A stretch of 61,875 nucleotides of DNA, filler included, from Choristocarpus tenellus KU-1152 (lineage: Eukaryota; Protista; Phaeophyceae), in assembly GCA_964200185.2 (NCBI GenBank). It is 15 parts of 15 records of this genome, joined end to end, with 100 filler letters (N's around TTAATTAATTAA, not from the genome) between each part and the next. Parts side by side here need not be neighbours in the genome. Positions count along the whole stretch, not along the records: positions 19,152 to 25,019 come from CAXNAD020009553.1; 14 more parts are not named here. One strand, 5' to 3'. The translations under genes were made by a program, and so were the position numbers. This document shows positions 9,828-25,728 of the stretch, one piece after another; within the stretch, counting starts at the first letter, position 1; each line of letters starts with the position of its first letter. A model generated the notes under the pieces. It saw nothing but the letters and a program-made list of their open reading frames with translations. It ran no database searches and was not told the DNA's origin.

Positions 9828-10249
9828 GATGACACGTACACTTAATAAAAAAAGGTTGCCTAAGTTAACGGAGGCAAGAAGTCGCATTTAGGTATGGGTG
9901 TCGATACAAACTAGGAAGTTGTGCTTGCCTATCAGATCGAATAGAATACTGTATGGAAGGACTCTCTGTTTTGAACTGCGCTAGAGTTGTGCTTGAATTG
10001 GTGGTATTGAAATGTCTTACAGGGCCCGCTCATCGCTAGGAACCTGATGGTGACCACCCCCCACCCTGATTTGTCCTGTGGGTGGATAACAATTTAGTGT
10101 GTCTACATGTTGTCACGGGTGCTCTGCTTGGTGTTGAGTGTAGCAGCAGTGGGAAGTATCACTCTGAATAAATTTGGTCATTTTCTGTTTGGAAGAGGTC
10201 ATGTGGTACCTTTTTTGTTGTTGTTAGGTGTGCAGTGGGGGTGCCATTT

Positions 10250-11660
10250 GAAGGCAGGCTTGGGCCAAGTCAAAAATACACACCTGCATAAACTGACATG
10301 CCTTTGTTGTGAAGTTACTTTAAGGCATATGCCACCATTTCCGGTCTGACATGCCTTCAAGTTTTTTTTTTAATATCTGCCTGCAAAAACTCAACAAACA
10401 GTATAATCTATGCCATTACGTGTCTGTTTTACGACTTTGTCTCATTCACTCCATTGTGGCAACATGTCCCCCTGCAATGCCATTTACATGGAGTTAAAAG
10501 ATTTGGTTCAGATATCAGGTACAGCATGAGCCATATTATCTTAGAGGGTAGAGCCGCGGTCCATTTGGGGGCCAAAATCCAATGTTGCGATTTTGATGTA
10601 ATTTTGGCTATCATGTTTGTTAGGAAGTGTCAATGTCCTTGTTCCAGATACACCTTTTCATAATGTATACAGTTTACCTACTCCGAAATATTTTGGAGTA
10701 GGAAAATGTCACAAAAAACCCCGAGGGGAGTCAAGCCCCAAATGGACAAACAGGGCAAAACTCGTACCCTCTAAGGTACTTTCACTCGCATATCACAACA
10801 TCTATTAGTTTAGGTACCAGAATCCATCTGCCCAGATCTTGAAGTAAAAGCACTGGAGAACTCCACTTCGCCTTATTCAGCAGTGCGTAGTCACACTCTA
10901 GTCCACTCTCTTTAACCTCCACCTCTAAGACCAACATGGTATGGTACTACTGTATAAACGGAGATGGAGGAATACTCATCCCTCCACCGCCATCTCCCTC
11001 ACTACCCTGTGTCTCTGTCCAGTCTTCTGATAATACAACCCCGTCCTCACCAGTCTTACTTGTATTGCTCGAAACACAAGCTACCTCCAGTAGCTCATCC
11101 TCTTACGTCCTGTGCCAAGGCTTTAATATTTACATGAAGTGGTGGTTTCTTTTCAATAGGTTCTGTTTTGACCTTAAGACCGAATGGCATGATAATACCT
11201 TGAGTCATCACCAGACCAGCGCTCGTGGCCTCCTCCACAAAGTCCATGACCACGGTATCCACCTCATACCAGCAACAAGGACCTGTAACTGGTCAGTCAT
11301 TTGGTTGTTAAAATAATAATGTAGATAAAAACATAGGGCATAGCTGCAGTTGGACAGTAGTTGCATGGCACAAATACTGTAATAGTGCAGACAGCATTAC
11401 TACAACACAGAAACAGTAGGCGTAAGAGCTTCCCCTTGTATGTCATGGTTTCCTTACTGCCTCCTCATGCCCTTTCCACTAGCAAGAAGTCGCTCTTGTT
11501 CTTGCTGACACTAGTTCATACAATGATCCTCACGTCAGCACCATATTGCCCCATTCTACTCACTTGGTTTATCTTGCGTCCACCTAGCAACTCCAGCACT
11601 TTGTCTTTCTTTGACAAAGGCGTTTTTTTTTCCAGTTTGTCGGCACCCCGTTTGTCCTTG
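10250..11660 (-). mobile_element. Possible highly decayed pogo/Tigger-like transposase remnant, interrupted by MITE A
   Basis: Fragments resembling CENP-B-type HTH regions (LSKKDKVLELLGG, YEVDTVVMDFVEEATSAGLVMTQGII) followed by YLNQIFN in the expected order; many stops and frameshifts. Confidence 0.3.
10528..10787 (+). mobile_element. MITE family A (~260 bp, Sola2-like termini)
   Basis: TIRs GAGCCATATTATCTTAGAGGGTA / TACCCTCTAAGGTACTTTCACTC; 4-bp TSD GCAT; eight copies or ends in the window. Confidence 0.9.
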
Positions 11661-12535
11661 TGCTTCTCCTTGCTCTTTTCCATGCCAGACAAGGCACTTC
11701 CCCCAGCTATGTTGGTGGCAATTTATCCCAATGACGACCTTATCCTGGACAGCTGTGCCCTGCCAGCAACGAGATGGTTGTTTCCAGATGGAGGAGAAGA
11801 AGTCCTTGACACTGCAACAGGCTTGTTATCACTGGTGCCCTGGTCACTCTTCCCTTCTTGGGAGTGTGACAAGCAAAGCACGGCCTCTTCATCTCATCCT
11901 CTCCAAATCCAGATCCGCAGTACTCCAAGCCTCTCATGAACTGACCAAGTAGCTTTGAGGGGATGTCTGTGCACAAGAGGAATGTATGGAGAGATCATAC
12001 TATAATGGAGCCCATGCCCCATCCCATCTCCCTCATACACAGAGGATACGTTTTTCTGTTTGTGTATTTCTTCAAATGATGCTTGATATTTATTTTACGA
12101 AATTCTATTTCGTATCATAGATGTGCCACAGTACAAGACACATTATGGAGTGCCTATCTACCGGCGTTTTGAAATGCTAGGAATTAATTTACCAAAGATG
12201 TCCTAAAGAGGCTGAAATCTAAGGGAGGATTCAATCAGGCACTTCTTGTGTGTCTGCTCATTGGGTACTCTGCTCAAAGTTCCTCACAGAGCTTCGTTTT
12301 GCATGGCGCTGTGCATTCTCACTTCAATTCTATTCTAGTGTGTATTAATTTTTGCAGCAGAGTTCATTGGTGCTCACCAAATCTTTTGATTCGCATCTAC
12401 CAATATTTTATCTTCACTTCCACGTTCGATCTTGAAAATAGTTTCATTATATCTAGAGGCGTTCGCTTCAGAATCTCTTGCCATAGGCTCGACCCTATCT
12501 CACCTGATTGTGTCACTGTTCTTCCCATCAATCAG

Positions 12536-12728
12536 GATGCAGGATTGATTTTCCTCTGCAGAATCACGACAGATGTGGCGGTGATAATGCTCAATAACGG
12601 TTTTGCACCTGAGGAGACGGTGGCAACGGCCTTGGCAGCCACAGCGTTAGGCACTGCAGGGCTAGGGCTCTGCCTGGTGGCTGTGGGGAAGATGCACCTT
12701 GGTCGGTTTGTCACATACCTCCCCATGC
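12536..12728 (+). CDS. SulP/SLC26-family anion transporter, single exon, partial
   Basis: CAG acceptor at 12533-12535, then DAGLIFL...ETVATALAATALGTAGLGLCLVAVGKMHLGRFVTYLPM. The GKxxLGRFVxYLP(xPV) motif is typical of SulP transmembrane cores. Cut by the contig end. Confidence 0.75.
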
Positions 12729-13607
12729 NNNNNNNNNNNNNNNNNNNNNNNNNNNNNNNNNNNNNNNNNNNNTTAATTAATTAANNNNNNNNNNNNNNNN
12801 NNNNNNNNNNNNNNNNNNNNNNNNNNNNGGGAGAAAGCCAGCACCCCCCCAAAAAAAGGAAAGTACAAGTGCGCATCAATAGAGGAAACAACTGCACGTC
12901 ACAGTCAGCCAATAGGATGTGTGAATTTGCACTATGAGACCTCCCTTACCCCTTAAATACTTGCACCATTCTCCGGGGGGATGCATAGTGGCGGATACCC
13001 CCATCACCTGGGAAGCACTGCATAGGCAGTGATGGGGCCTGTCATTGTTGTGCAATGGCCTTTACTATATAAGACTAGCGAACTGAAACAAGCTGTGGGG
13101 CATGGGGCAGGGAAAGGTGAGGCAGAGTGAGGATGGCAGGGGAGGGGTCTCCCCCTCCAGAGCTTTCAGAGGAGATCGATAAATGGAACCAACGTGCACT
13201 CGAGGGTTGACCAAGGCGCCAAATCATTTTCGTTCCAACATACTACTCCAGAAGAATCCAAATTTTGATGAGCTGCGAGTGGGAGCTTAACAATTTATCA
13301 CATTTACTGCAACAAAACAAAACAATCACGGCGACCAAGGTTGACGTACATTTTTGGATTCAGCAATGTACACTTCAAACGTCCCTGCTTCCTTCGCCTT
13401 TGAACTCCCAAACAATCAGCCATTTCAGTGTCAGCCCCAGCACACCACAAAGCCCTAACCCCCTACCTACACCCCGATTACAAATCTCGAGGACCTAATC
13501 CTTGCCTCGAACTCCGCCTCCCAAGTGTTATGATGCATCACTTAACCGCCTCAACGCTTTGCGATTCCCGCTCGTCCGTTTCCATGACCTTGGGATGGCG
13601 GTGGTAG

Positions 13608-16600
13608 GTGGACATCGAACAGCTGCACAACACGCTGCAGCAGCGATTCGGCACCCCAAGAGGTAGAAGGTCCTCCTCAGCAGCAGGGGACAGGTTGCCC
13701 CGCCAACCCGTGATGTTGACGACCACCAGCGGCAGTGAACCTACTGCTATTCTTCCCGGCAAGGAGTTTTGCTCTACTCAAGGCTCAGGAAATGCGCCCA
13801 TTGCAGCCCTGCCGGCCTCGTGTGCCACCTTGGAAAGGTTCCGAAGGAAACTGGCCTTGTCGTTCAGGTCTGGGGATGGGTGGGGGGGTACCAGGAGCCT
13901 GGCGCAGGCCTTGTCGGCCTTAGACACGAATGGCACCGGTAGGCTCACCAAGGTGTGTATGGGTAGGTAATGCCTTGCGAACGAAAGTACCTTAGAGAGT
14001 AAAGGCACATCCATTTGGGGGCCAAATTCCAACATTGCAATTTTGATGCGATTTTGGCTATCGTGTTTGTTAGGAGATGTTGATATCCTTGTTGCGGACA
14101 CAACCTTTCATAATAACGTAAACATTTTACCTACTCCGAAACATTTTGGAGCAGGTAAAATGTCACTAAAAACCCGTGGGAAGCCAACCCTCAAAATGGA
14201 CACAAGGGGAAAAACTCATACCCCTCTAAGATACTTTCACTCTTGTAATTTTGAGTGAAGTGGTTAGTCCACTCGTTTGACACTCCTGGAAGGGGCTGCA
14301 GATGAACTTCAGTGCCTCTGGCCCTTGCTTGAGTTTCATCACAAGGCACGGCATCACTCCCTGATAATATGTTTCTAGCAGCACCTATAGCTTCGAATGG
14401 TAGCTTTGTAGGGTAGGACCAAGTTAAATAGCCTGTATGTTGGGTGACAATGAATCACTGAGGTATGAATGAGGCCTCTGCAAGGTCTTGGAAAACCCTC
14501 ATTCTTGGCAATAAGGCAAGGTAGACACCACCATTCGAAATTAGTTGTGACAGCTGCCACTCAATAAGTTGGTTGCTTCTGTATACATATATATAATAGG
14601 CTCAATTATATATTGTGTACATATAGTATAGACTAGTATATACTATATATGCTGAGCCCTGTTTTTTGTTGTTAGGAGGGTGGTATGAGAGTGTAGGTCA
14701 AAATAGCTACTTTTATCCTGGAAGCCAGTCCTGCTCATGAGGTACACTACCTTGTAATAAAATATCACCCAAACAATCACAACACTGATGATGGTGTGCA
14801 AACACGAGTACATGCGACAGGAGAGGTCCACAACGGCGCTTACCTTACACCTCCTGCATCCCAGATAGGAAAAGATAGCACAGAGAAATAGATGTGCAAA
14901 GGAGGTGCAGCACACACTCTGGAACAGAAGTTTAGACAAATTTAACCTACTTGGGAGAAGAAAAACTTGAGCACACCTTTTCGTAATGGTAAGTAATACT
15001 ACACAACGTTGTTAAGATTGTTGATGGGGTTTTTTTTAACGACATCTGTCCCTGTCAAGATCCTAGCCCTCACCCTTAACTCAAACACTTGTGAGAGACG
15101 GCGACTAGGGTTATCTGCAACGTGACAGTGTGACTGTGACAGAGGACATGTCACTGGGAGGTGTGCGCATCAATAGCAAAGTCCCATAGCATCCTAGAGG
15201 GGCGGGGGTGGGGGGGTGTTCTTCCTTAAGTGATCTGTTCATTCGGGCTTGATGAGGGTATTTACAAGACACCCAAGTTTTTGATGCCCTTTTTGAGAGT
15301 GAGTTCTCTTCGGAGTTGGACTGGGGAGGGGGAGGGAACTGGAGGGTGCATTTAGATGAAGGAAGTTGCCCTTATCTCTGATTCGTTCACTGGTATGACA
15401 TCATGAAACCACTACAGGGTTACACAGGTCCCACGTGGACGCCTGCACCCCCTCTAGGATGTTGTGCCTCGAGGTGTTACATGCTTAGGGTTAGGGCCGA
15501 TTAGATATCACGGGATACAGACGGGATAGATCTTCCGTACCCACCTGATTCGCTCTCTCCTCAAGGATGTTCGGACAACAGCGGGTGTTAATACAGTTCC
15601 TGTGAAGTTGGGTTGGTTCAGGAAGTACAGGTTCGCCTTGATAATCCTGGAGTAGTGGGTAGTGGAATCATTGCAACCCGGGTCTAACACATAGTTTGTT
15701 CCAAAGAGTTACTACTACTACATTTATTTGTTGCCTGGGTGTTGTCCAGAACTCGAATCCCCCAAAAAGGAAGGAGTAACCGTGGCCCTAACTCTGACCA
15801 CCTTACCTCTAACCAACTCCAGGAGCAGCAATGCGTGAGAGGGAGAAGAGGCAAGGGGTATTTGACGCTGCGTTCATTGCACGCTGAAAGCACTTGAATA
15901 GAAGAGAGAAGTGGCTTTGTAATATTTGTAGACAATGTTGTTCCTCCCTCAATCCCTGACACTCCAACAACTCTTTGTTTTCGCGTGTGAGCCAAAGAAG
16001 TAAGCGAGAGTCACCCAGCTCTTGCCCGTTCTACATCATTAGCTACTAACTACCCTTTCAATCTTTTTTGCAATTCACCCATATTTCTATGGATGAACCG
16101 TTAAGTTCGACACGAGAGCGTTCATCTCTTCCTTTCATTTGAGAATTTTCCGACACACGAGCCAGAAATTTTTCCTGTAAGCGTTTTTTTTTTTTTTTTT
16201 TTAAAATAACTTTTTATGCACCCTGGTTTTTTTTTTTTGCCCTTCTTAAAATTCAAAAACCTGTGGTACCTCTCTCGTTTACTATGAAATCTGTGCTCCT
16301 CTTCGTGACGGCAAAGGGCATAGGACTAGCACAATCTCGTTGTTGGACAACAAGAATAATGACGAGATCAAGGGGGAAAGTGGCATTGTGTGAACGTGAA
16401 CGACTGCGATAAATCGGGTAACATGCGTATGTCAGTCGAGTTGAGCAAGTAGGATAAGTTTACCTACCCCCAAAAAAGAGTATTCCCTAACCCATCCTCT
16501 CTTTGTTGTTGATAATCTTGGCACAGCTTGCACCTCCCTCTGTTAACCAAGTGAAGCAACTGGCAAGTGAAAGTATCTTAGAGGGTACGATTTTTTGCCC

Positions 16601-17488
16601 TGTTTTTTTGTCCATTTGGGGATATTGGCTTCGCAGGGGGGGTGGGTTATTACGTTTTTTGGGAGTTGGTAAAATGTATACGTTTTGAAAGGTGTGCCCG
16701 GAACAAGGATATTGACACTTCCTACCAAAAACACGATAGCCGAAATTACATAAAAATCGCAACAGTGGATCTTTGATCCCAAAATGAACACAGCTCTACC
16801 CTCTAAGGCCCTCCTTTTGTTCATTATCACTGCCCAAATCACCCCCTTTCGCATCGGCACCTTAAACTACACAAACACCTCTTTCCAAAAAAAAATAACC
16901 CTACCCAGAAACAACAATATTAACAACAACGAAAATATAAATAACAAAAATAACACACCTATTTATTTATTTTTCCCAGGAGGAGCTGAAACGAGGCCTA
17001 AACAAGCATGGCGTCCAGGTCACCATGAAGGACATGGAAGACGTCTTCACATCGTTCAAACACACCCGCAACATTCCCCGGGGGGAGAGTGAAAGTTCTA
17101 GTTCTAGTGCTGGGGTCATGTGTCAGCAGACCCTGGACTACTGCGTGCTACTGCGTGGGGTCAGGGGAGAGCTAAACACACCCCGGACAAAGGCCGTGGA
17201 GGGCATATTTCGAAAATTAATCAAGCTACAGGGTGGAGAAGGCACATTTTCCGGGCGGGCAGAGGGGATCTGCACTAGCAGAGGCGCAGGCAATGAAAAC
17301 GTGTTGTTAGGACAGAATGATTTTGGTGGAAAGAAGGTTGAAGTGGAGGCCTTGAGAAAGGCGTTTGTTGGCACCCGGGGAAGGACCTCGGGGGTGGAGA
17401 AGGGGAAGTATGACGTTCTGTGCCCTCCTTTCCTACTGCCGGGATGGACAAAGGCGGTTACGCTTGAGGACTTCAAAGAGTACTACAG
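13608..17488 (+). CDS. Calcyphosin-like EF-hand protein, partial
   Basis: Exons 13608-13952 and 16980-17488 join in phase 0: LERFRRKL..GGTRSLAQALSALDTNGTGRLTK|EELKRGLNKHGV..DMEDVF..LDYCVLLRGVRGELNTPRTKAVEGIFRKL..VTLEDFKEYY. This follows the calcyphosin (CAPS) layout. Confidence 0.75.
13979..14242 (+). mobile_element. MITE family A
   Basis: TIRs GAACGAAAGTACCTTAGAGAGTA / CCCCTCTAAGATACTTTCACTC; TSD TTGC/TTGT; intronic, 26 nt after a donor site. Confidence 0.88.
15179..15470. mobile_element. MITE-like element family E (~290 bp)
   Basis: Perfect 13-bp inverted repeat CATCCTAGAGGGG (15190-15202) / CCCCTCTAGGATG (15449-15461); the right end is ...GTGCCTC. The TIR resembles family A (TATCTTAGAGGG). 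No clear TSD. Confidence 0.5.
16565..16807 (-). mobile_element. MITE family A, inverted, one end decayed
   Basis: AAGTGAAAGTATCTTAGAGGGTACG...CTACCCTCTAAG; the body is the reverse complement of other family A copies. Confidence 0.85.
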
Positions 17489-17544
17489 GTGGGGCATGTA
17501 ACAGCAGGCAGTTTGTGTCGAGGTTAATGCATACTGCAGAAATA

Positions 17545-17803
17545 GAGTCAAAGTATCTTAGAGGGTAGAGCCGTGTCCGTTTGGGGGTCAAAATCCAATG
17601 TTGCGAGTTTGATGTAATTTTGTGTGTGTGTTTGTTAGGAAGAGTCAATATCCTTGCTCTGGACACAACTTTTCATAATGTGTACATTTTACCTACTCCA
17701 TAACATTTCAGAGTAGGAAAATGTCATAGAAGAAGAAACGTGGAAGCCAAGTCTCAAACAGACAAACAGGGTAAATCTCATACACTCTAAGATACTTTCA
17801 CTC
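17545..17803 (+). mobile_element. MITE family A
   Basis: GAGTCAAAGTATCTTAGAGGGTA...TACACTCTAAGATACTTTCACTC; flanks share ATA. Confidence 0.88.
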
Positions 17804-19051: not shown

Positions 19052-19360
19052 NNNNNNNNNNNNNNNNNNNNNNNNNNNNNNNNNNNNNNNNNNNNTTAAT
19101 TAATTAANNNNNNNNNNNNNNNNNNNNNNNNNNNNNNNNNNNNNNNNNNNNAAGAAGGAGACAGGGAGAGGAGGGAGAAGGGGTGCAGGAGTGAGGGGGG
19201 GCATACCCACAATCGCTGATACCGCAGTTGAGACATAGAGTTTCTATCACCAGCCACAACAAATGTGCAGGCGTGCAAAAAATGGAAAGCTCATGTAACT
19301 GCCTTGGTCATCGCTGACGCGAGCGTCTAAGATTCTCTTTCCGTCGGGGTTGAAAAATAC

Positions 19361-20104
19361 CTTGGGGTGCCAGGAAATAAGCCCCACAAAAACGTACGCT
19401 AGACCCCTTGCCATCCAGTTCTCCAGAAAGCCGAAGTGCTTTGTGAACCGACGCCATTCCAGCTCCGAAAATACCACAAATACGCAGAAGAAAATGTTAT
19501 AGCTTCGAATAACAACGCCTCTCACTGGATCCACAGGCATCGGCGAAGGATACGGAGTGTTGTTGTGATGGCGAAGTATTGCGAGTTCAACTTGTAAGGA
19601 AAAAGGGACGGTCCAGACCATTGACTTTATGCTTTGCAAGTTATTACAAGAGTGTTTCGAATAACTTGTGGAAAAGGAGTCCCGTCTGACTCGCAATCCT
19701 CAAAGTCTAGAGGTTTATCCAGGTTGAAAACATCGATAGGCACAGAGTGCCAACAAAATTTATATTTCCTGAAGACTCGACCTCACCCGGCCTTACTTTT
19801 CACACCCACCTCCGAGTTCATCAAAATCTACGTATATGATGTAGCCATTGGCTCCGAGCACCACCAAGGCCAGCAATATAGTGAGGATTGTGATGAAGCG
19901 GAAGAAGCACAGCGTCTTTGACAAACCACGATCATCGTCCTTGGCAGATTGCGCGGACGACACTGGACGAGGTGTCACCGGCATCGGTTGCGGTGAAGTA
20001 GGATCGATACCGATTGTATCGCCCTCGGGAACCAGCTTCTCCCCGAGATCGGAACCTCCCCCAATCTCTCCTTCCTCCTTGACCCAAGAAGGTTCATCCG
20101 CCAT
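19361..20104 (-). CDS. COPI-associated (Tvp15-like) membrane protein, 5' part
   Basis: ATG at 20104; exons 20104-19810 and 19524-19361 join in phase 1. The peptide VVIRSYNIFFCVFVVFSELEWRRFTKHFGFLENWMARGLAYVFVG has the FGFLxxWxxRGxxYxFVG signature of the COPI_assoc family. The 3' end is off the contig. Confidence 0.75.
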
Positions 20105-20469
20105 TCTTGAGGTATTTCAAGAACTGTGACGCCGCCCTTTACAATGCCTATGCAACCGTCGATGATGCCAAAACCTTTGCCTTCTCTTTGCTCTTGGTCT
20201 CGTTCCAGTCAGGAGGGAACCAAGTTGGTGATGGAGCTAATCGACTAGGTATAGGACATGCAACAATAGGACAAATGTAGAAAAGTAAATTGTGATTGGT
20301 CGACGATTTTGAGTGTTATACAATGCAGACTGGTTCAACAATGAAACTGGTGGTTCCAACAAACTATGACATGTCAGGACCAGGTCCACCAAGTATTGGA
20401 ACCTGTCTTTGCGTGGACCGGACTAGAGTGGTGATTCCAACACTTTCATATTTTCTTTTTCCCTTTATA

Positions 20470-20897
20470 TGTAGTGGGGGCTGGTTCTGTTGGCGCTGAT
20501 AAAGCCGAGGTCCCGGGTTCGAGTCTCGGCGTGAGTACCACTGTAATGGGGTCTGGTTCTGTGTGATGGAGGGTGATGAGAACCACCAGAGATGAGGTTC
20601 AGAAAGGAAGTGAAGGACGAGACTGAGGCATGCTGGGTGTATGTTGACAACTTCAGATGTGGATCAATCTTCGATGCGATTGGTTGTGATCAGCCAGAAC
20701 AGAAAACATAATCTCGAGGTTTGCTGGTTTGAATCCACCGTTCATATCGGGGTTACCGCGTGCCACGTGCGTCTGACCCACAACACATCACTTGCCTTGC
20801 CCTCAATCATAAAAGGTGACGCGCGCAATTGTATATGACCGCGCGTATTATCCTCATCAATGTCGGAGATCCCAAAAAAGGTGACCTATCCCTGACA
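20470..20897 (-). mobile_element. Solo LTR (428 bp) with embedded tRNA-Ile 3' segment and duplicated U5 end
   Basis: TG...CA termini, 4-bp TSD TATA (20466-20469 / 20898-20901), and full-length homology to 45314-45735 in opposite orientation. Confidence 0.85.
20491..20540 (+). pseudogene. tRNA-Ile-derived segment (tRNA positions 27-76 including CCA) inside the LTR; not a complete tRNA gene
   Basis: TGGCG-CTGATAA-AGCCG-AGGTC-CCGGG-TTCGAGT-CTCGG-CGTGAGT-A-CCA has canonical anticodon arm, 5-nt variable loop, T arm, acceptor 3' strand and CCA spacing. The D arm and the 5' acceptor strand are absent. Confidence 0.85.
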
Positions 20898-21506
20898 TAT
20901 ACTATCAAATCATACTGTATCATATGAAGATACCGATTGGATCGGTCCGATTAGAAAAATCGAAGATTAATCGAAACCGAAACTCTTGGGACCCATTTCT
21001 TGTTTGTTCTAATACTTCTTTTTCTGGAATGTTTGGAGAAGGGAGCAAGGAACACACAAAACGACACAACCAAACACACAATAATAAAAACATACATGTC
21101 TAGACTGTAAGCCTCGGGAGTGCCCAGGTACTCCGAAGACGGTCAGGGTGGATTCCTACAAGGAAGGAGTGAGTATGATGTCGACACATCTGTCGGATGT
21201 ACCCTTCTGGTTGTGTATGTGTGGAGAATGATGGCAAGGAAGGCGATGTGTGGCACCAGGAATGAACTGTCAACTGTGAAGACGGGTCGCTGACCGAAGG
21301 AAGACCACCGCCGTCATATCGCCACCCACCACCACCACAGCATAATAGAATGCTGTTGTTTGGAATGTGTGACTAGTGTAGCCTTGTCGGATCAGGGGTG
21401 AAGGATGCCATGAAATCAAGTCAGGTAGCTGTTAGGGCCTATCCCACTTTTAGCCAATGAAAAGAACGCTTGGAGGAAATGTGCAGGAAGGATGTCAACA
21501 ATCAAA

Positions 21507-21761
21507 TAGTCAGACCGACTGAGGTAGGCAGGGTTGCATTTTAAGGATTTTAAGAAAGGGCAAAATATTCCATTTTGTACAATTAATTGCAGAAAGAGCA
21601 CTACTTGCTTAAGATTATGTGGTGTCACTATATTGTTGGAGGGGAAAACATCAATTTTGTGAACATTATTGTGTACATTAAACAATGAATTGGAATGAAG
21701 GTAAAACGCGGCTTGGAAAGCAGAAGGTCCAAACCTGTCTACCTCTCAATTGGTCTAGCTC
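21507..21761 (+). mobile_element. MITE family D (~255 bp), diverged
   Basis: TAGTCAGACCGACTGAGGTAGG...CTACCTCTCAATTGGTCTAGCTC; homologous to 21823-22082 and 25729-25986. Confidence 0.75.
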
Positions 21762-21822
21762 AAACCCAAAGAAGTGAGTACCAGCTCCAACCATCTCCAC
21801 CACTCCAACTATTCAAATGTTA

Positions 21823-22082
21823 GAGCCAAACCAATTGAGAGGTAGCCAGTTTGCCTTTTAAGGATCGCGAGAAAAGGACAAAATTAGGTCATTATGTAAT
21901 ATTCCAAAAAGGGGCCCTTTGCTTCATCGTGGTGTCACTTTGGGTGTGGAAAGGGGAATATCAATTTTGTGTGCACTATTGTGCACATAAAGCAATGAAA
22001 TAGAGTGTATTGCGTACGGCAAGAAAGGTGGCTTAGAGTGCAGAGGGGTCCAAACCTGCCTACCTCTCAATTGATTTGACCT
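21823..22082 (+). mobile_element. MITE family D
   Basis: TIR GAGCCAAACCAATTGAGAGGTAG / CTACCTCTCAATTGATTTGACC. Confidence 0.82.
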
Positions 22083-24154
22083 ACTGCCGATTACTGGGTG
22101 GTCGTTACAGTCCTCCGTGGCCAATGGCTGACTCACAGGGGGACCACCACCAATTTATTGTACAGATGGACACAAGCAGGATGGCAAGAGTAGAGAATTT
22201 CTTAGGGCATGTCATTTGCTTGTACTGCCTGCCGTCAGGCTTAACCCTAACCCTGTAAGTACTAAGCCCAATACAGAGTGCCAAAGTCGCCATCTCGCAG
22301 GATGAAACAACAATCAAATTTCCATATTTGAACATTTTACTCTCCTTTGTACTTACTCTATTGCAAAAGGCTCATCTCTATTAAACATTTTTTGTGTAAC
22401 AATGAGTGAAAATGTCACAGTCATCACACACTTTATTTTACCCTCCGCTATCATCATCATTTGAAGATACGACAAACACACATGCAGACACACAGACACC
22501 AACAATTAACACTACCAGAGCATGATGCGGAAAAAACAGACAGGCACACAAATCACAAGGCAAAAGGGCAGGCCAGAGGAGCTCTGCTTCTTGCCTGCTC
22601 CGCAGAAGAAGTGGTAGATATGTAGAAGCGTAAGAAATACAGGTGACAAGAATGGTTCTCGTTCAAGAGGCCCAACTCTGTCATGAACAAGACCAAGATG
22701 CGACCAGTGAAGTCCATGTAGAGATTGCAAGTCTGAGCAGACAAAAAAGACGATGAGTCCTACAGCACAGCAAAATCGAAGCGCATCATTTCAAGGACAC
22801 AAGACCCACCCCAACAACGACAGAAATCATTTTCCTAGGATGCATTCAGTGAACCTCTGCCTCCTCCCTATGTGCTGCTGGTACCTAAAGCACATGATAG
22901 GTAGTCTTCTCCCATCCATCCCATACTGTTGCGACACTCACTCCATCGTGACAAAGACACACCAAAACTTCTTGACCGGTGTACTGGTCAAGGACCTGCA
23001 TCTCTCCTGCAAGTTCATCATCATCATCTCTCCATTTCCGCGCACTACACCGTACATAGCAGCAGCACAAACAGAAACAAAAACATACAACCGTACATCG
23101 TTAGAGCTCTGGTGCACATGCTCAGGCTCCTTGCAGGGCTCCAGCACTGGCTCAGAGGAAACTCCAACCCAGTCTTTGGACAATACTGCCCCTCATCCAC
23201 CGCGCCTACACCCGCTCAGTGTCTTTAGCCCCCACTAGCCTGGTGCTGGCAGCCCTCAGCCCACTCACACATCCATACACAGAAGATGTGCCAAAGATTG
23301 AAGGGGTATCGACTATGGCACCGAAAGCAACCCCCCCAACAGATCAAATTGCATTCCACATTTACAACAGTAGGGCGCGTTCATCCTGCGATCTCTGCCT
23401 CCCCAGTCACAACATATACATAGACCCCCATGATCAATCTGACAAATCAAAAGATCTCTTCCCAGTCTGGTGTGGACGTCGAGTCGACTTCCGTCGTAGA
23501 AGTGCGGTCCCTTGTGGAGAGTCTGCCGTAGACAGGTCTTCCCTCACATCAACCATCTCCCCCACTGCAAACATCCCTCCATGCCCCTCCCCACCCACTA
23601 CATGCAGAGGTGATACAGGGCGCTCAATGGCTATGCTGCCCTCCACCCACCCTGCTTCTCCACCACCAAATTGGCCCCCCTGCTCCTGTTCCTCGTGTCT
23701 GCTACTACAGCAGCCCTCGACAACATTATTACAAATGATTTCAGCCCCTGGAGTTTCCAATCATTGCAAGAGCATGGTATCATAAAGGAAATTTACGAAG
23801 GGGCGTGCGGACGGTGTGGGGCGATCAGGCCAGATGAACAATATAGCACGACGAGAGAATGGAACGCCTGGAGGTTAAGGGGGTGTCACAACTGTTGGGC
23901 TGCAGGAAGAGAGGGAGTGGGGGCAGAGGCGAGAGGGGACAGAGATGTACAATTACTTGTAGATGCTGGAGGCTCGAGGGGATAGAGATGTTGTACAATC
24001 ACTTGCAGGTGGTGAAGGCTAGAGGGGCAGGAGGGGGATAACACAAATAGACAGACGGGCATTGGGAGGTCAATCAACAAAGGTGCATCTGGTACACCAT
24101 CACCAATTTGCTCCCAATTGTTGTCTGTTTTGTATAAATCTTTGTTCATATGTT

Positions 24155-24158
<4 letters not shown>

Positions 24159-24199
<41 letters not shown>
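24159..24199. repeat. (TG)n microsatellite
   Basis: About 20 TG units, directly visible. Confidence 0.95.
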
Positions 24200-24201
<2 letters not shown>

Positions 24202-25728
24202 TGTGTCGGTGTGTGCGTCTCTCTGTCCACATTTGTCACTGTCTGCATGACAATGCAACTTGGCAATCATACCATCAAACATCGAGATGACCCTGTTCCA
24301 CCAGGGTTGGTTGTTAGTCACATCATGGCGACACTGTCTATCCCGGGGGACCAGTGCCATTTCAATGTTTGGCAATCTGAGTCTTGTCCAGAAAATAACA
24401 TTAATAACATCGTCAAATACGAGTTTTAAAATGCATCTCTTCTCGTGGAAGTTGCATCCCTGGGTTCATCCAACTGTAGTGCACAATATCCTAGATCCAA
24501 CCACTTCTATTTTCACGTTTGAATCTACAATACAGCATCAGCATCCATTATCACACATGGCACTACTCTTTCCTTGCTACAAGCAGGCCACAACAATTGA
24601 TCACCGAGATTCATCCTCAAGGTCTCTCTTCTCATCACTGGACACAAGAGATACAGGGTACCTCAAACTGTCACCAAACACATCAACCCACAAGAACGTT
24701 TTATGACAAAAAAAGACTCGGCAAGTCAGTCAGACAGTCAGCCTCTACAAAAAAAAAAAACTACCCAAAGAAAAAAAGAAAGGCCCCCCAGCTAGTCACG
24801 TTTGGCAAAACATATCATTTCTGGAGAGCACAAACAGGTGTTAAAATTCTTGGAGTCACCCATACAATCAACTGGACACTAAAAAAACCAACCAGAGGTC
24901 CGTTCCGCAGTATCTACATCAAAATCCACCCAGGCGCTTCAAAAAAAGATTCGGGGGGGGGGGGGGGGGGGGGCACACAAGGCGGAGGAAAAACGCACCC
25001 CACCCGCCCAAAACACAACNNNNNNNNNNNNNNNNNNNNNNNNNNNNNNNNNNNNNNNNNNNNTTAATTAATTAANNNNNNNNNNNNNNNNNNNNNNNNN
25101 NNNNNNNNNNNNNNNNNNNGAGAGTGTCGGGGTGGGTTTCTATGGGTGGAAGAGGAGGATAAGCTCCAGCAACTATCCACCACTGCGTTCCAGCAGACCA
25201 AGGAGGAAAGGGTCAGGGGGGTCGTCCACACCTAACTGTTGTGGAGAAGGAGATGACCTAGCTAAACAGACGTGCATATATAACAAAATATGGGATCTGA
25301 GCCACCCCTTTCAGGGTGTGTGAGATTAGTAACTGAGGGCCCTTTGACAGTATATTTTGGTAGTATTCATAAATACTTGAGTACATACGTGTGTTTCTAC
25401 CAATAGGACTATATCTAAAGTCCGATTTCTCATTTACTTTTGCCGGTGAATGCTCGTTTGTCCCCCTCTTCTACAGTTACAGCCTTCTACGAGGGTAAGC
25501 AGCATTTCAGGCATGGGAAATCGAGTGTCAGACAGAGATTGTAAAATCCATACCTGTATTCTACTCAAAAGGGCCAAGGCGGATCCCCTTTAATGGTGGG
25601 ATGGCTCATCTGTGCGTAACTTCCACCTTCAAACTGCCGACTAACAAGGCATTTTACGTAAAATACCACCAGTAGAAAAGGCGCACCACAGGCCAGGGCC
25701 TTGAAGTCGAACAAATGGATGACGCACT

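Follow-up and report, generated by a model that had tools for sequence, protein, structure and literature searches.

An LTR remnant of the brown alga Choristocarpus tenellus KU-1152, in which a stretch complementary to a large part of a tRNA stands between two copies of the same LTR end, raises the question of whether the tRNA sequence belongs to this one copy, to the heritable LTR of its family, or to the family in some other way. The window, by which we mean the whole stretch of DNA that was analysed (61,875 nucleotides, consisting of 15 parts of the genome joined by filler), contains the locus in a piece of 5868 bp from contig CAXNAD020009553.1 (positions 19,152 to 25,019; all positions are those of the window). 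An earlier note, made from the sequence alone, had proposed that an ancestral element copied its own primer tRNA between two U5 ends and that the product became the new heritable LTR end. Contigs of public sequencing runs lead to a different division between family and locus. The unusual part is found at the level of the family, whose PBS-leader is complementary to two-thirds of a tRNA-Ile-like primer, at least 46 nt through the anticodon loop; the specific locus is an ordinary dead remnant.

Structure of the remnant and of its tRNA complement

The element and its two flanking duplications occupy 20466-20901 and are composed of the following features, listed in the order in which they are read on the minus strand.

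20898-20901, no strand: TSD TATA on the U3 side, identical to 20466-20469
20542-20897, minus: LTR of 356 bp, TGTCAGG...CATTACA, the 5' LTR of the original element (from the sequence and contig ends)
20541, minus: 1-nt spacer G between the terminal CA of the LTR and the PBS (from the sequence)
20491-20540, minus: PBS and extended leader, 50 nt complementary to tRNA positions 76-27 (from Rfam, the segment map and contigs)
20470-20490, minus: 21-nt copy of the LTR terminus (19/21), taken as the remainder of the 3' LTR (from a repeat search and contigs)
20466-20469, no strand: TSD TATA on the U5 side (from the sequence)

The LTR starts with TGTCAGG at 20897, directly inside the TATA at 20901-20898, and ends with ...ACAGAACCAGACCCCATTACA (20562-20542). 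One nucleotide past its terminal CA, TGG opens the 50-nt block 20540-20491, which is followed by the outer copy of the LTR end, ACAGAACCAGCCCCCACTACA, at 20490-20470. The two ends are identical at 19 of 21 positions (repeat family D9). The locus thus displays the TG...CA ends, the TATA TSD and the PBS with CCA right after the 5' LTR that are expected of an LTR retrotransposon. A second full LTR, a PPT and gag/pol are missing at the locus, where the second LTR is represented by the 21-nt stub only, and none of the ORFs of the 5868-bp piece encodes a TE protein domain. The 4-bp TSD, which would match by chance in AT-rich flanks in an estimated 1% or so of cases, is moderately informative and not proof. 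Peptide searches with the 61-aa ORF that spans the LTR end and the PBS and with the 65-aa ORF inside the LTR yielded no candidates.

The 50-nt complement can be divided without remainder into tRNA positions 27-76. The segment map consists of a 5-bp anticodon stem, the 7-nt loop CTGATAA, the variable loop AGGTC, a T arm with TTCGA, the 7-nt 3' strand of the acceptor stem, A73 and CCA. The plus strand is the tRNA sense strand, with the anticodon GAT at 20498-20500, the B-box-like motif GGTTCGAGTC at 20516-20525 and CCA at 20538-20540. The geometry has a single flaw, a G:A mismatch at pair 31:39. In a targeted search, positions 26-71 of the Rfam tRNA model matched 20491-20537 as a tRNA truncated at its 5' end (21.8 bits, E 0.005), a score below the 29-bit Rfam gathering threshold, as expected of a block that amounts to two-thirds of a tRNA. 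The Rfam scan of the whole piece misses the block, since it does not allow an internal truncated match. No whole tRNA was found in the piece by ARAGORN, and the block is not a functional tRNA gene, as the 5' strand of the acceptor stem and the D arm with the A box are absent and LTR sequence takes the place of positions 1-26. Judged by its anticodon loop, CUGAUAA, the sequence resembles tRNA-Ile.

The order of LTR, G, 50 nt, 19/21 copy of the end and TATA therefore reads exactly as the earlier note had described it, including the TATA duplication outside the second U5 end (20469-20466 and 20901-20898). Its description of the unit as an LTR whose tRNA-primed PBS continues as a contiguous tRNA complement was borne out by the sequence and the Rfam match, and the latter together with the segment map also confirms the geometry of positions 27-76, the CCA and the anticodon GAT.

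A gene lies near the element. An ORF on the minus strand (19250-19696) encodes a COPI_assoc domain and is 100% identical to a partial protein of C. tenellus (CAXNAD020009553.1, GCA_964200185.2). It belongs to an annotated partial gene of a COPI-associated membrane protein (PF08507; 19370-20104, minus), the first exon of which starts with the ATG at 20104. The LTR remnant lies approximately 366 bp upstream of this gene in the same orientation and, from its position in the sequence, could supply it with a promoter or with read-through transcription. Apart from this position, the copy is inert. Between the element and the gene, 20343-20435 is moderately repeated, with summed depths of 97, 443 and 40 in one of the sequencing runs described below (X1), compared to approximately 19 in the flanks, and a peak at 20374-20404. 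Immediately past the outer TATA, the minus strand continues with a run rich in purines, AAAGGGAAAAAGAAAA (about 20465-20450). On the other side of the element, a unit of about 310-320 bp occurs at 21520-22080 as two direct copies that have diverged (D1, D5, D6; 75-96% identical) and contain inverted repeats of 26-34 nt (I1, I2, I9); the region may represent a local tandem duplication or else a small repeat of the foldback or MITE type. Further away are a (GT)n microsatellite at 24150-24200, to which a spurious weak match of SCARNA7 in Rfam is due, and, close to the contig end, about 21 consecutive G (24953-24973).

Family copies in contigs of three sequencing runs

Logan contigs of three public C. 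tenellus runs (X1, X2 and X3) were aligned to 20250-21150 with a likeness of at least 80%. The flanks of the element are single-copy, each side being represented by one error-free contig, with an X1 word depth of about 19-21. The LTR, 20542-20897, is covered by 1223 contigs in X1, 767 in X2 and 80 in X3, where contig depth is not equal to copy number. At 20542, 24 contigs of X1 and 22 of X2 leave the repeat and enter unrelated AT-rich flanks (agreement 0.45-0.47), and at 20897 20 contigs of X1 leave it into diverse flanks. The true termini of the LTR are thus 20542 and 20897, and neither the tRNA block nor the 21-nt copy is part of the family LTR. The contigs also display a further property of LTR retrotransposons, a family of repeats in which the LTR termini are constant and the flanks vary.

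The LTR together with the tRNA block is nevertheless a feature of the family, and many copies carry at least 46 nt of the tRNA complement (50 nt in the copy under study). In X3, a contig of 3541 nt (record 17) aligns to 20496-20897 and extends about 1.8 kb past the block with no match to the 21-nt copy or to the flank, and another contig (record 18) spans 20496-20649, so that the block is joined to the LTR. In X1 and X2, contigs that reach into the LTR have their left ends at 20491 and 20495, as obtained from end distances of 33 at 20524 and 35 at 20526 and of 50, 52 and 57 at 20545, 20547 and 20552. With the contig of the locus itself excluded, 27 contigs of X1, 20 of X2 and 2 of X3 contain C at 20524 instead of the T of the window, and at 20526 C replaces T in 15, 13 and 1 contigs, respectively; among the contigs over 20498-20537 there could be genuine tRNA genes or members of another family that shares the PBS. 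Both changes render the T arm more canonical (G52:C62), so that the ancestral block was more tRNA-like than the copy at this locus.

At the left edge of the block the family comes to an end in another manner. The summed depth in the bin 20467-20497 is 94, 35 and 6 in X1, X2 and X3, compared to 2102, 490 and 122 in the next bin, and the value of 94 in X1 is close to the single-copy level. No family contig of the three runs connects the tRNA block with the outer 21-nt copy. As the matching to the family stops at about 20491-20496 and the depth drops there, the direct joining of the 21-nt copy to tRNA position 27 appears to be private to the locus. Unlike at 20542, the best-supported loose ends do not include a pile that enters unique flank at the left edge of the block, which fits the presence of repeated internal sequence at this place in the other copies. 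The contig ends at 20491-20495 are a hint that the conserved block of the family also ends at about positions 27-31.

These results separate what stands of the earlier proposal from what does not. That the tRNA cDNA between two U5 copies is the new heritable end of the LTR is not supported, given the family terminus at 20542 and the private junction. The antisense B-box that the LTR was said to carry exists as a B-box-like motif in the block, but the block lies outside the family LTR.

Origin of the locus and of the long complement

Based on these observations, the locus is probably an old copy, reduced by internal deletion, of an LTR retrotransposon present in high copy number in C. tenellus, and its tRNA block the leader of the family that would have arisen by ancestral read-through. 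A complete element, with 5' LTR, spacer, PBS and leader and, after the interior, the 3' LTR, would have inserted with duplication of TATA and would later have lost the whole sequence that separated the tRNA block from the last 21 nt of its 3' LTR. The loss may have occurred in the genome or, before integration, by a template jump during plus-strand synthesis. TATA at both outermost ends fits a single integration, and the outer 21 nt are best explained as what is left of the 3' LTR after the element lost its interior. The LTR ends differ at two of 21 positions, and the likeness of this LTR to the other copies is 80-90%, both of which indicate an old insertion. If the block of the family ends exactly at position 27, the coincidence of the breakpoint with this end would be unlikely for a random deletion and would favour a jump mediated by reverse transcriptase.

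The copying of mature primer tRNA is the most natural origin of the block, and the likeliest route would be ancestral plus-strand read-through into the primer tRNA. A contiguous complement that starts at CCA is the product expected when strong-stop synthesis passes position 58. Plus-strand strong-stop synthesis of an ancestor would thus have continued beyond this position into the tRNA, and the extra copy would have been fixed beside the PBS and from then on inherited through the RNA genome. In HIV-1, when reverse transcriptase does not stop at m1A58 or m5Um54, plus-strand DNA enters the tRNA and is non-complementary after transfer, an extension that normally kills the product (PMC8599865). 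A fixed leader would keep the read-through strong-stop DNA complementary at plus-strand transfer; the removal of the mismatch is a plausible reason for the persistence of the extension in a successful family.

At position 26 of a tRNA, m2,2G is a modification that would block reverse transcriptase. The block might accordingly be read as the germline-fixed cDNA of a mature tRNA-Ile(IAU), in which the wobble G would record inosine 34 and the end at position 27 the stop at m2,2G26, with reverse transcriptase routinely passing position 58 and the long leader kept for transfer. This reading of the sequence is tentative, and we consider it doubtful.

Alternatives to an internal deletion differ in what they make of the 21-nt copy. 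In one of them, the mechanism of the earlier note would apply to the copy at this locus only, as a single event of aberrant reverse transcription: plus-strand synthesis would have copied the primer tRNA or the leader as far as position 27, stalled, jumped back to the U5 end and run off, and the LTR-only product would have been integrated as a non-heritable mini-element. The breakpoint coincides with tRNA position 27/26, at which a block of the enzyme by m2,2G26 would be expected; the contig ends suggest that the family block ends about there too; the TSD at the outermost ends is intact, and additions of PBS or tRNA-primer sequence to retroviral cDNA ends have been documented, as dead-end products (PMC5618025, PMC9198661). 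Such an event, however, requires several rare steps, i.e. read-through, a jump without visible microhomology, the formation of double-stranded one-LTR DNA and its integration, and fresh copying of a tRNA is unneeded in a family that has already inherited the block. Its end product is indistinguishable from a deletion. We regard this course of events, the main rival of the deletion, as unlikely. That the 428-bp unit of LTR, tRNA cDNA and second U5 end is the heritable LTR of the family is very improbable. The TATA duplication outside the second end and the tRNA block in many copies would agree with it, but the family terminates at 20542, where the 24 and 22 contigs enter diverse flanks, its contigs stop matching at 20491-20496 with near single-copy depth over 20467-20497, and the long X3 contig runs 1.8 kb past the block without encountering a 21-nt copy or flank.

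In two other alternatives, for each of which we see hardly any chance, the tRNA sequence did not arise from the primer. The cDNA of a tRNA 3' fragment could have been retro-inserted into the LTR independently, a possibility that the earlier note had named, with the 21-nt repeat as its TSD. A 19/21 direct repeat does flank a CCA-bearing tRNA fragment, but the fragment is situated exactly at the place of the PBS, on the correct strand and with TGG 1 nt past the terminal CA, it has no A-rich tail, and it adjoins the LTR in many copies that have no second repeat. Alternatively, the LTR family may insert beside tRNA genes, the block then being a truncated genomic tRNA gene or pseudogene, or the block may derive from a bacterial or organellar tRNA-Ile(GAT). 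It contains a B-box, and its anticodon GAT is the one typically found in the tRNA-Ile of bacteria and organelles. Against such an origin, its CCA abuts the LTR in PBS orientation with a spacer of 1 nt. The GC-rich arms of the block are unlike those of plastid or mitochondrial tRNA-Ile. A better match to a bacterial tRNA-Ile(GAT), which the earlier note had also considered, was not obtained: exact patterns of the T arm plus acceptor strand (with or without CCA) and of the anticodon arm plus variable loop had 0 matches in 185,579 bacterial and archaeal genomes and likewise 0 in JGI metagenome contigs and in viral contigs. Derivation of the unit from a tRNA-derived SINE was considered and rejected, since an A box is absent, the CCA-bearing piece abuts a TG..CA repeat and the family copies begin sharply at 20542. 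The sole match of an exhaustive representative search (P0002) was discarded as spurious: a repetitive ORF of 2580 aa with no DNA similarity to the LTR. This ORF lies on an unrelated ENA metagenome contig (L002; ctg84964_25x_l, 10001-17743), has no Pfam domains and consists at the DNA level of tandem repeats of about 80 nt; it is a chance peptide match unrelated to the LTR element.

Significance and comparison with known systems

If intact elements confirm the internal deletion at this locus and the long leader of the family, the family would show that a PBS-leader complementary to two-thirds of the primer tRNA is heritable in, and tolerated by, an LTR retrotransposon. A leader of this kind touches the questions of what limits the plus-strand stop at m1A58 sets to the design of retroelements, of whether the tRNA-Ile of brown algae lacks this stop, and of a targeting of these elements by tRNA halves and 3' tRNA fragments. 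In the B-box-like motif, most family copies have C at 20524. Should the block accompany every intact element, many isolated antisense B-box motifs would be scattered over the genome as possible TFIIIC sites, which is pure speculation. If the reading as cDNA of mature tRNA-Ile(IAU) were true, the family would provide a natural genomic record of tRNA modification as well as a new PBS design. In the literature covered, which was partial and excluded older subscription papers, we found no description of a natural LTR element whose unbroken complement to a tRNA extends over about 50 nt, nothing on tRNA-Ile PBSs or on PBSs of brown algae, and no paper that contains the PBS string.

As a remnant, the locus closely resembles internally deleted LTR elements, which differ from the solo LTRs formed by LTR-LTR recombination and with which it shares a full LTR, little internal sequence, a stub and an intact TSD. 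Nothing fundamental distinguishes it from them; the one notable point is that the breakpoint lies so near the end of the tRNA block. With Cassandra TRIMs, which carry a 5S rRNA gene in their LTRs, the family shares a Pol III-type sequence that travels with an LTR element. The analogy drawn by the earlier note does not extend to a TRIM of the Cassandra type, where the Pol III gene lies inside both LTRs in sense orientation, whereas here the piece of tRNA is partial, antisense to the element and outside the LTR that ends at 20542. Over-copied primer tRNA beside U5 is also known from aberrant retroviral cDNA ends and 2-LTR circle junctions that contain PBS or tRNA-primer sequence (PMC5618025, PMC9198661) and from read-through beyond position 58 in the absence of m1A58 (PMC8599865). 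The retroviral products are somatic dead ends in infected cells; by contrast, the tRNA copy in C. tenellus is fixed in the germline and common to many members of the family.

A canonical PBS comprises approximately 10-18 nt that are complementary to the 3' end of the tRNA and is bounded by the m1A58 stop. The C. tenellus family has the canonical junction of LTR and PBS, i.e. a TG..CA LTR, a 1-nt spacer, TGG..., a short TSD, high copy number and LTR ends that abut the flank. However, a canonical PBS ends near position 58, whereas the complement of this family continues unbroken to about positions 27-31 (46-50 nt). Contacts of element RNA with the primer tRNA beyond its 3' end are a feature of Ty1, with its boxes 0, 1 and 2.1, and Ty3, the bipartite PBS of which pairs with the T and D arms of tRNAiMet. 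Pairing of this kind is predicted for the C. tenellus family from its sequence. The reverse transcription of Ty3 has been reviewed (PMC5371799). In Ty1 and Ty3 the additional contacts are short, separate boxes located elsewhere in the RNA, in contrast to the C. tenellus family, in which a contiguous copy of the tRNA adjoins the PBS.
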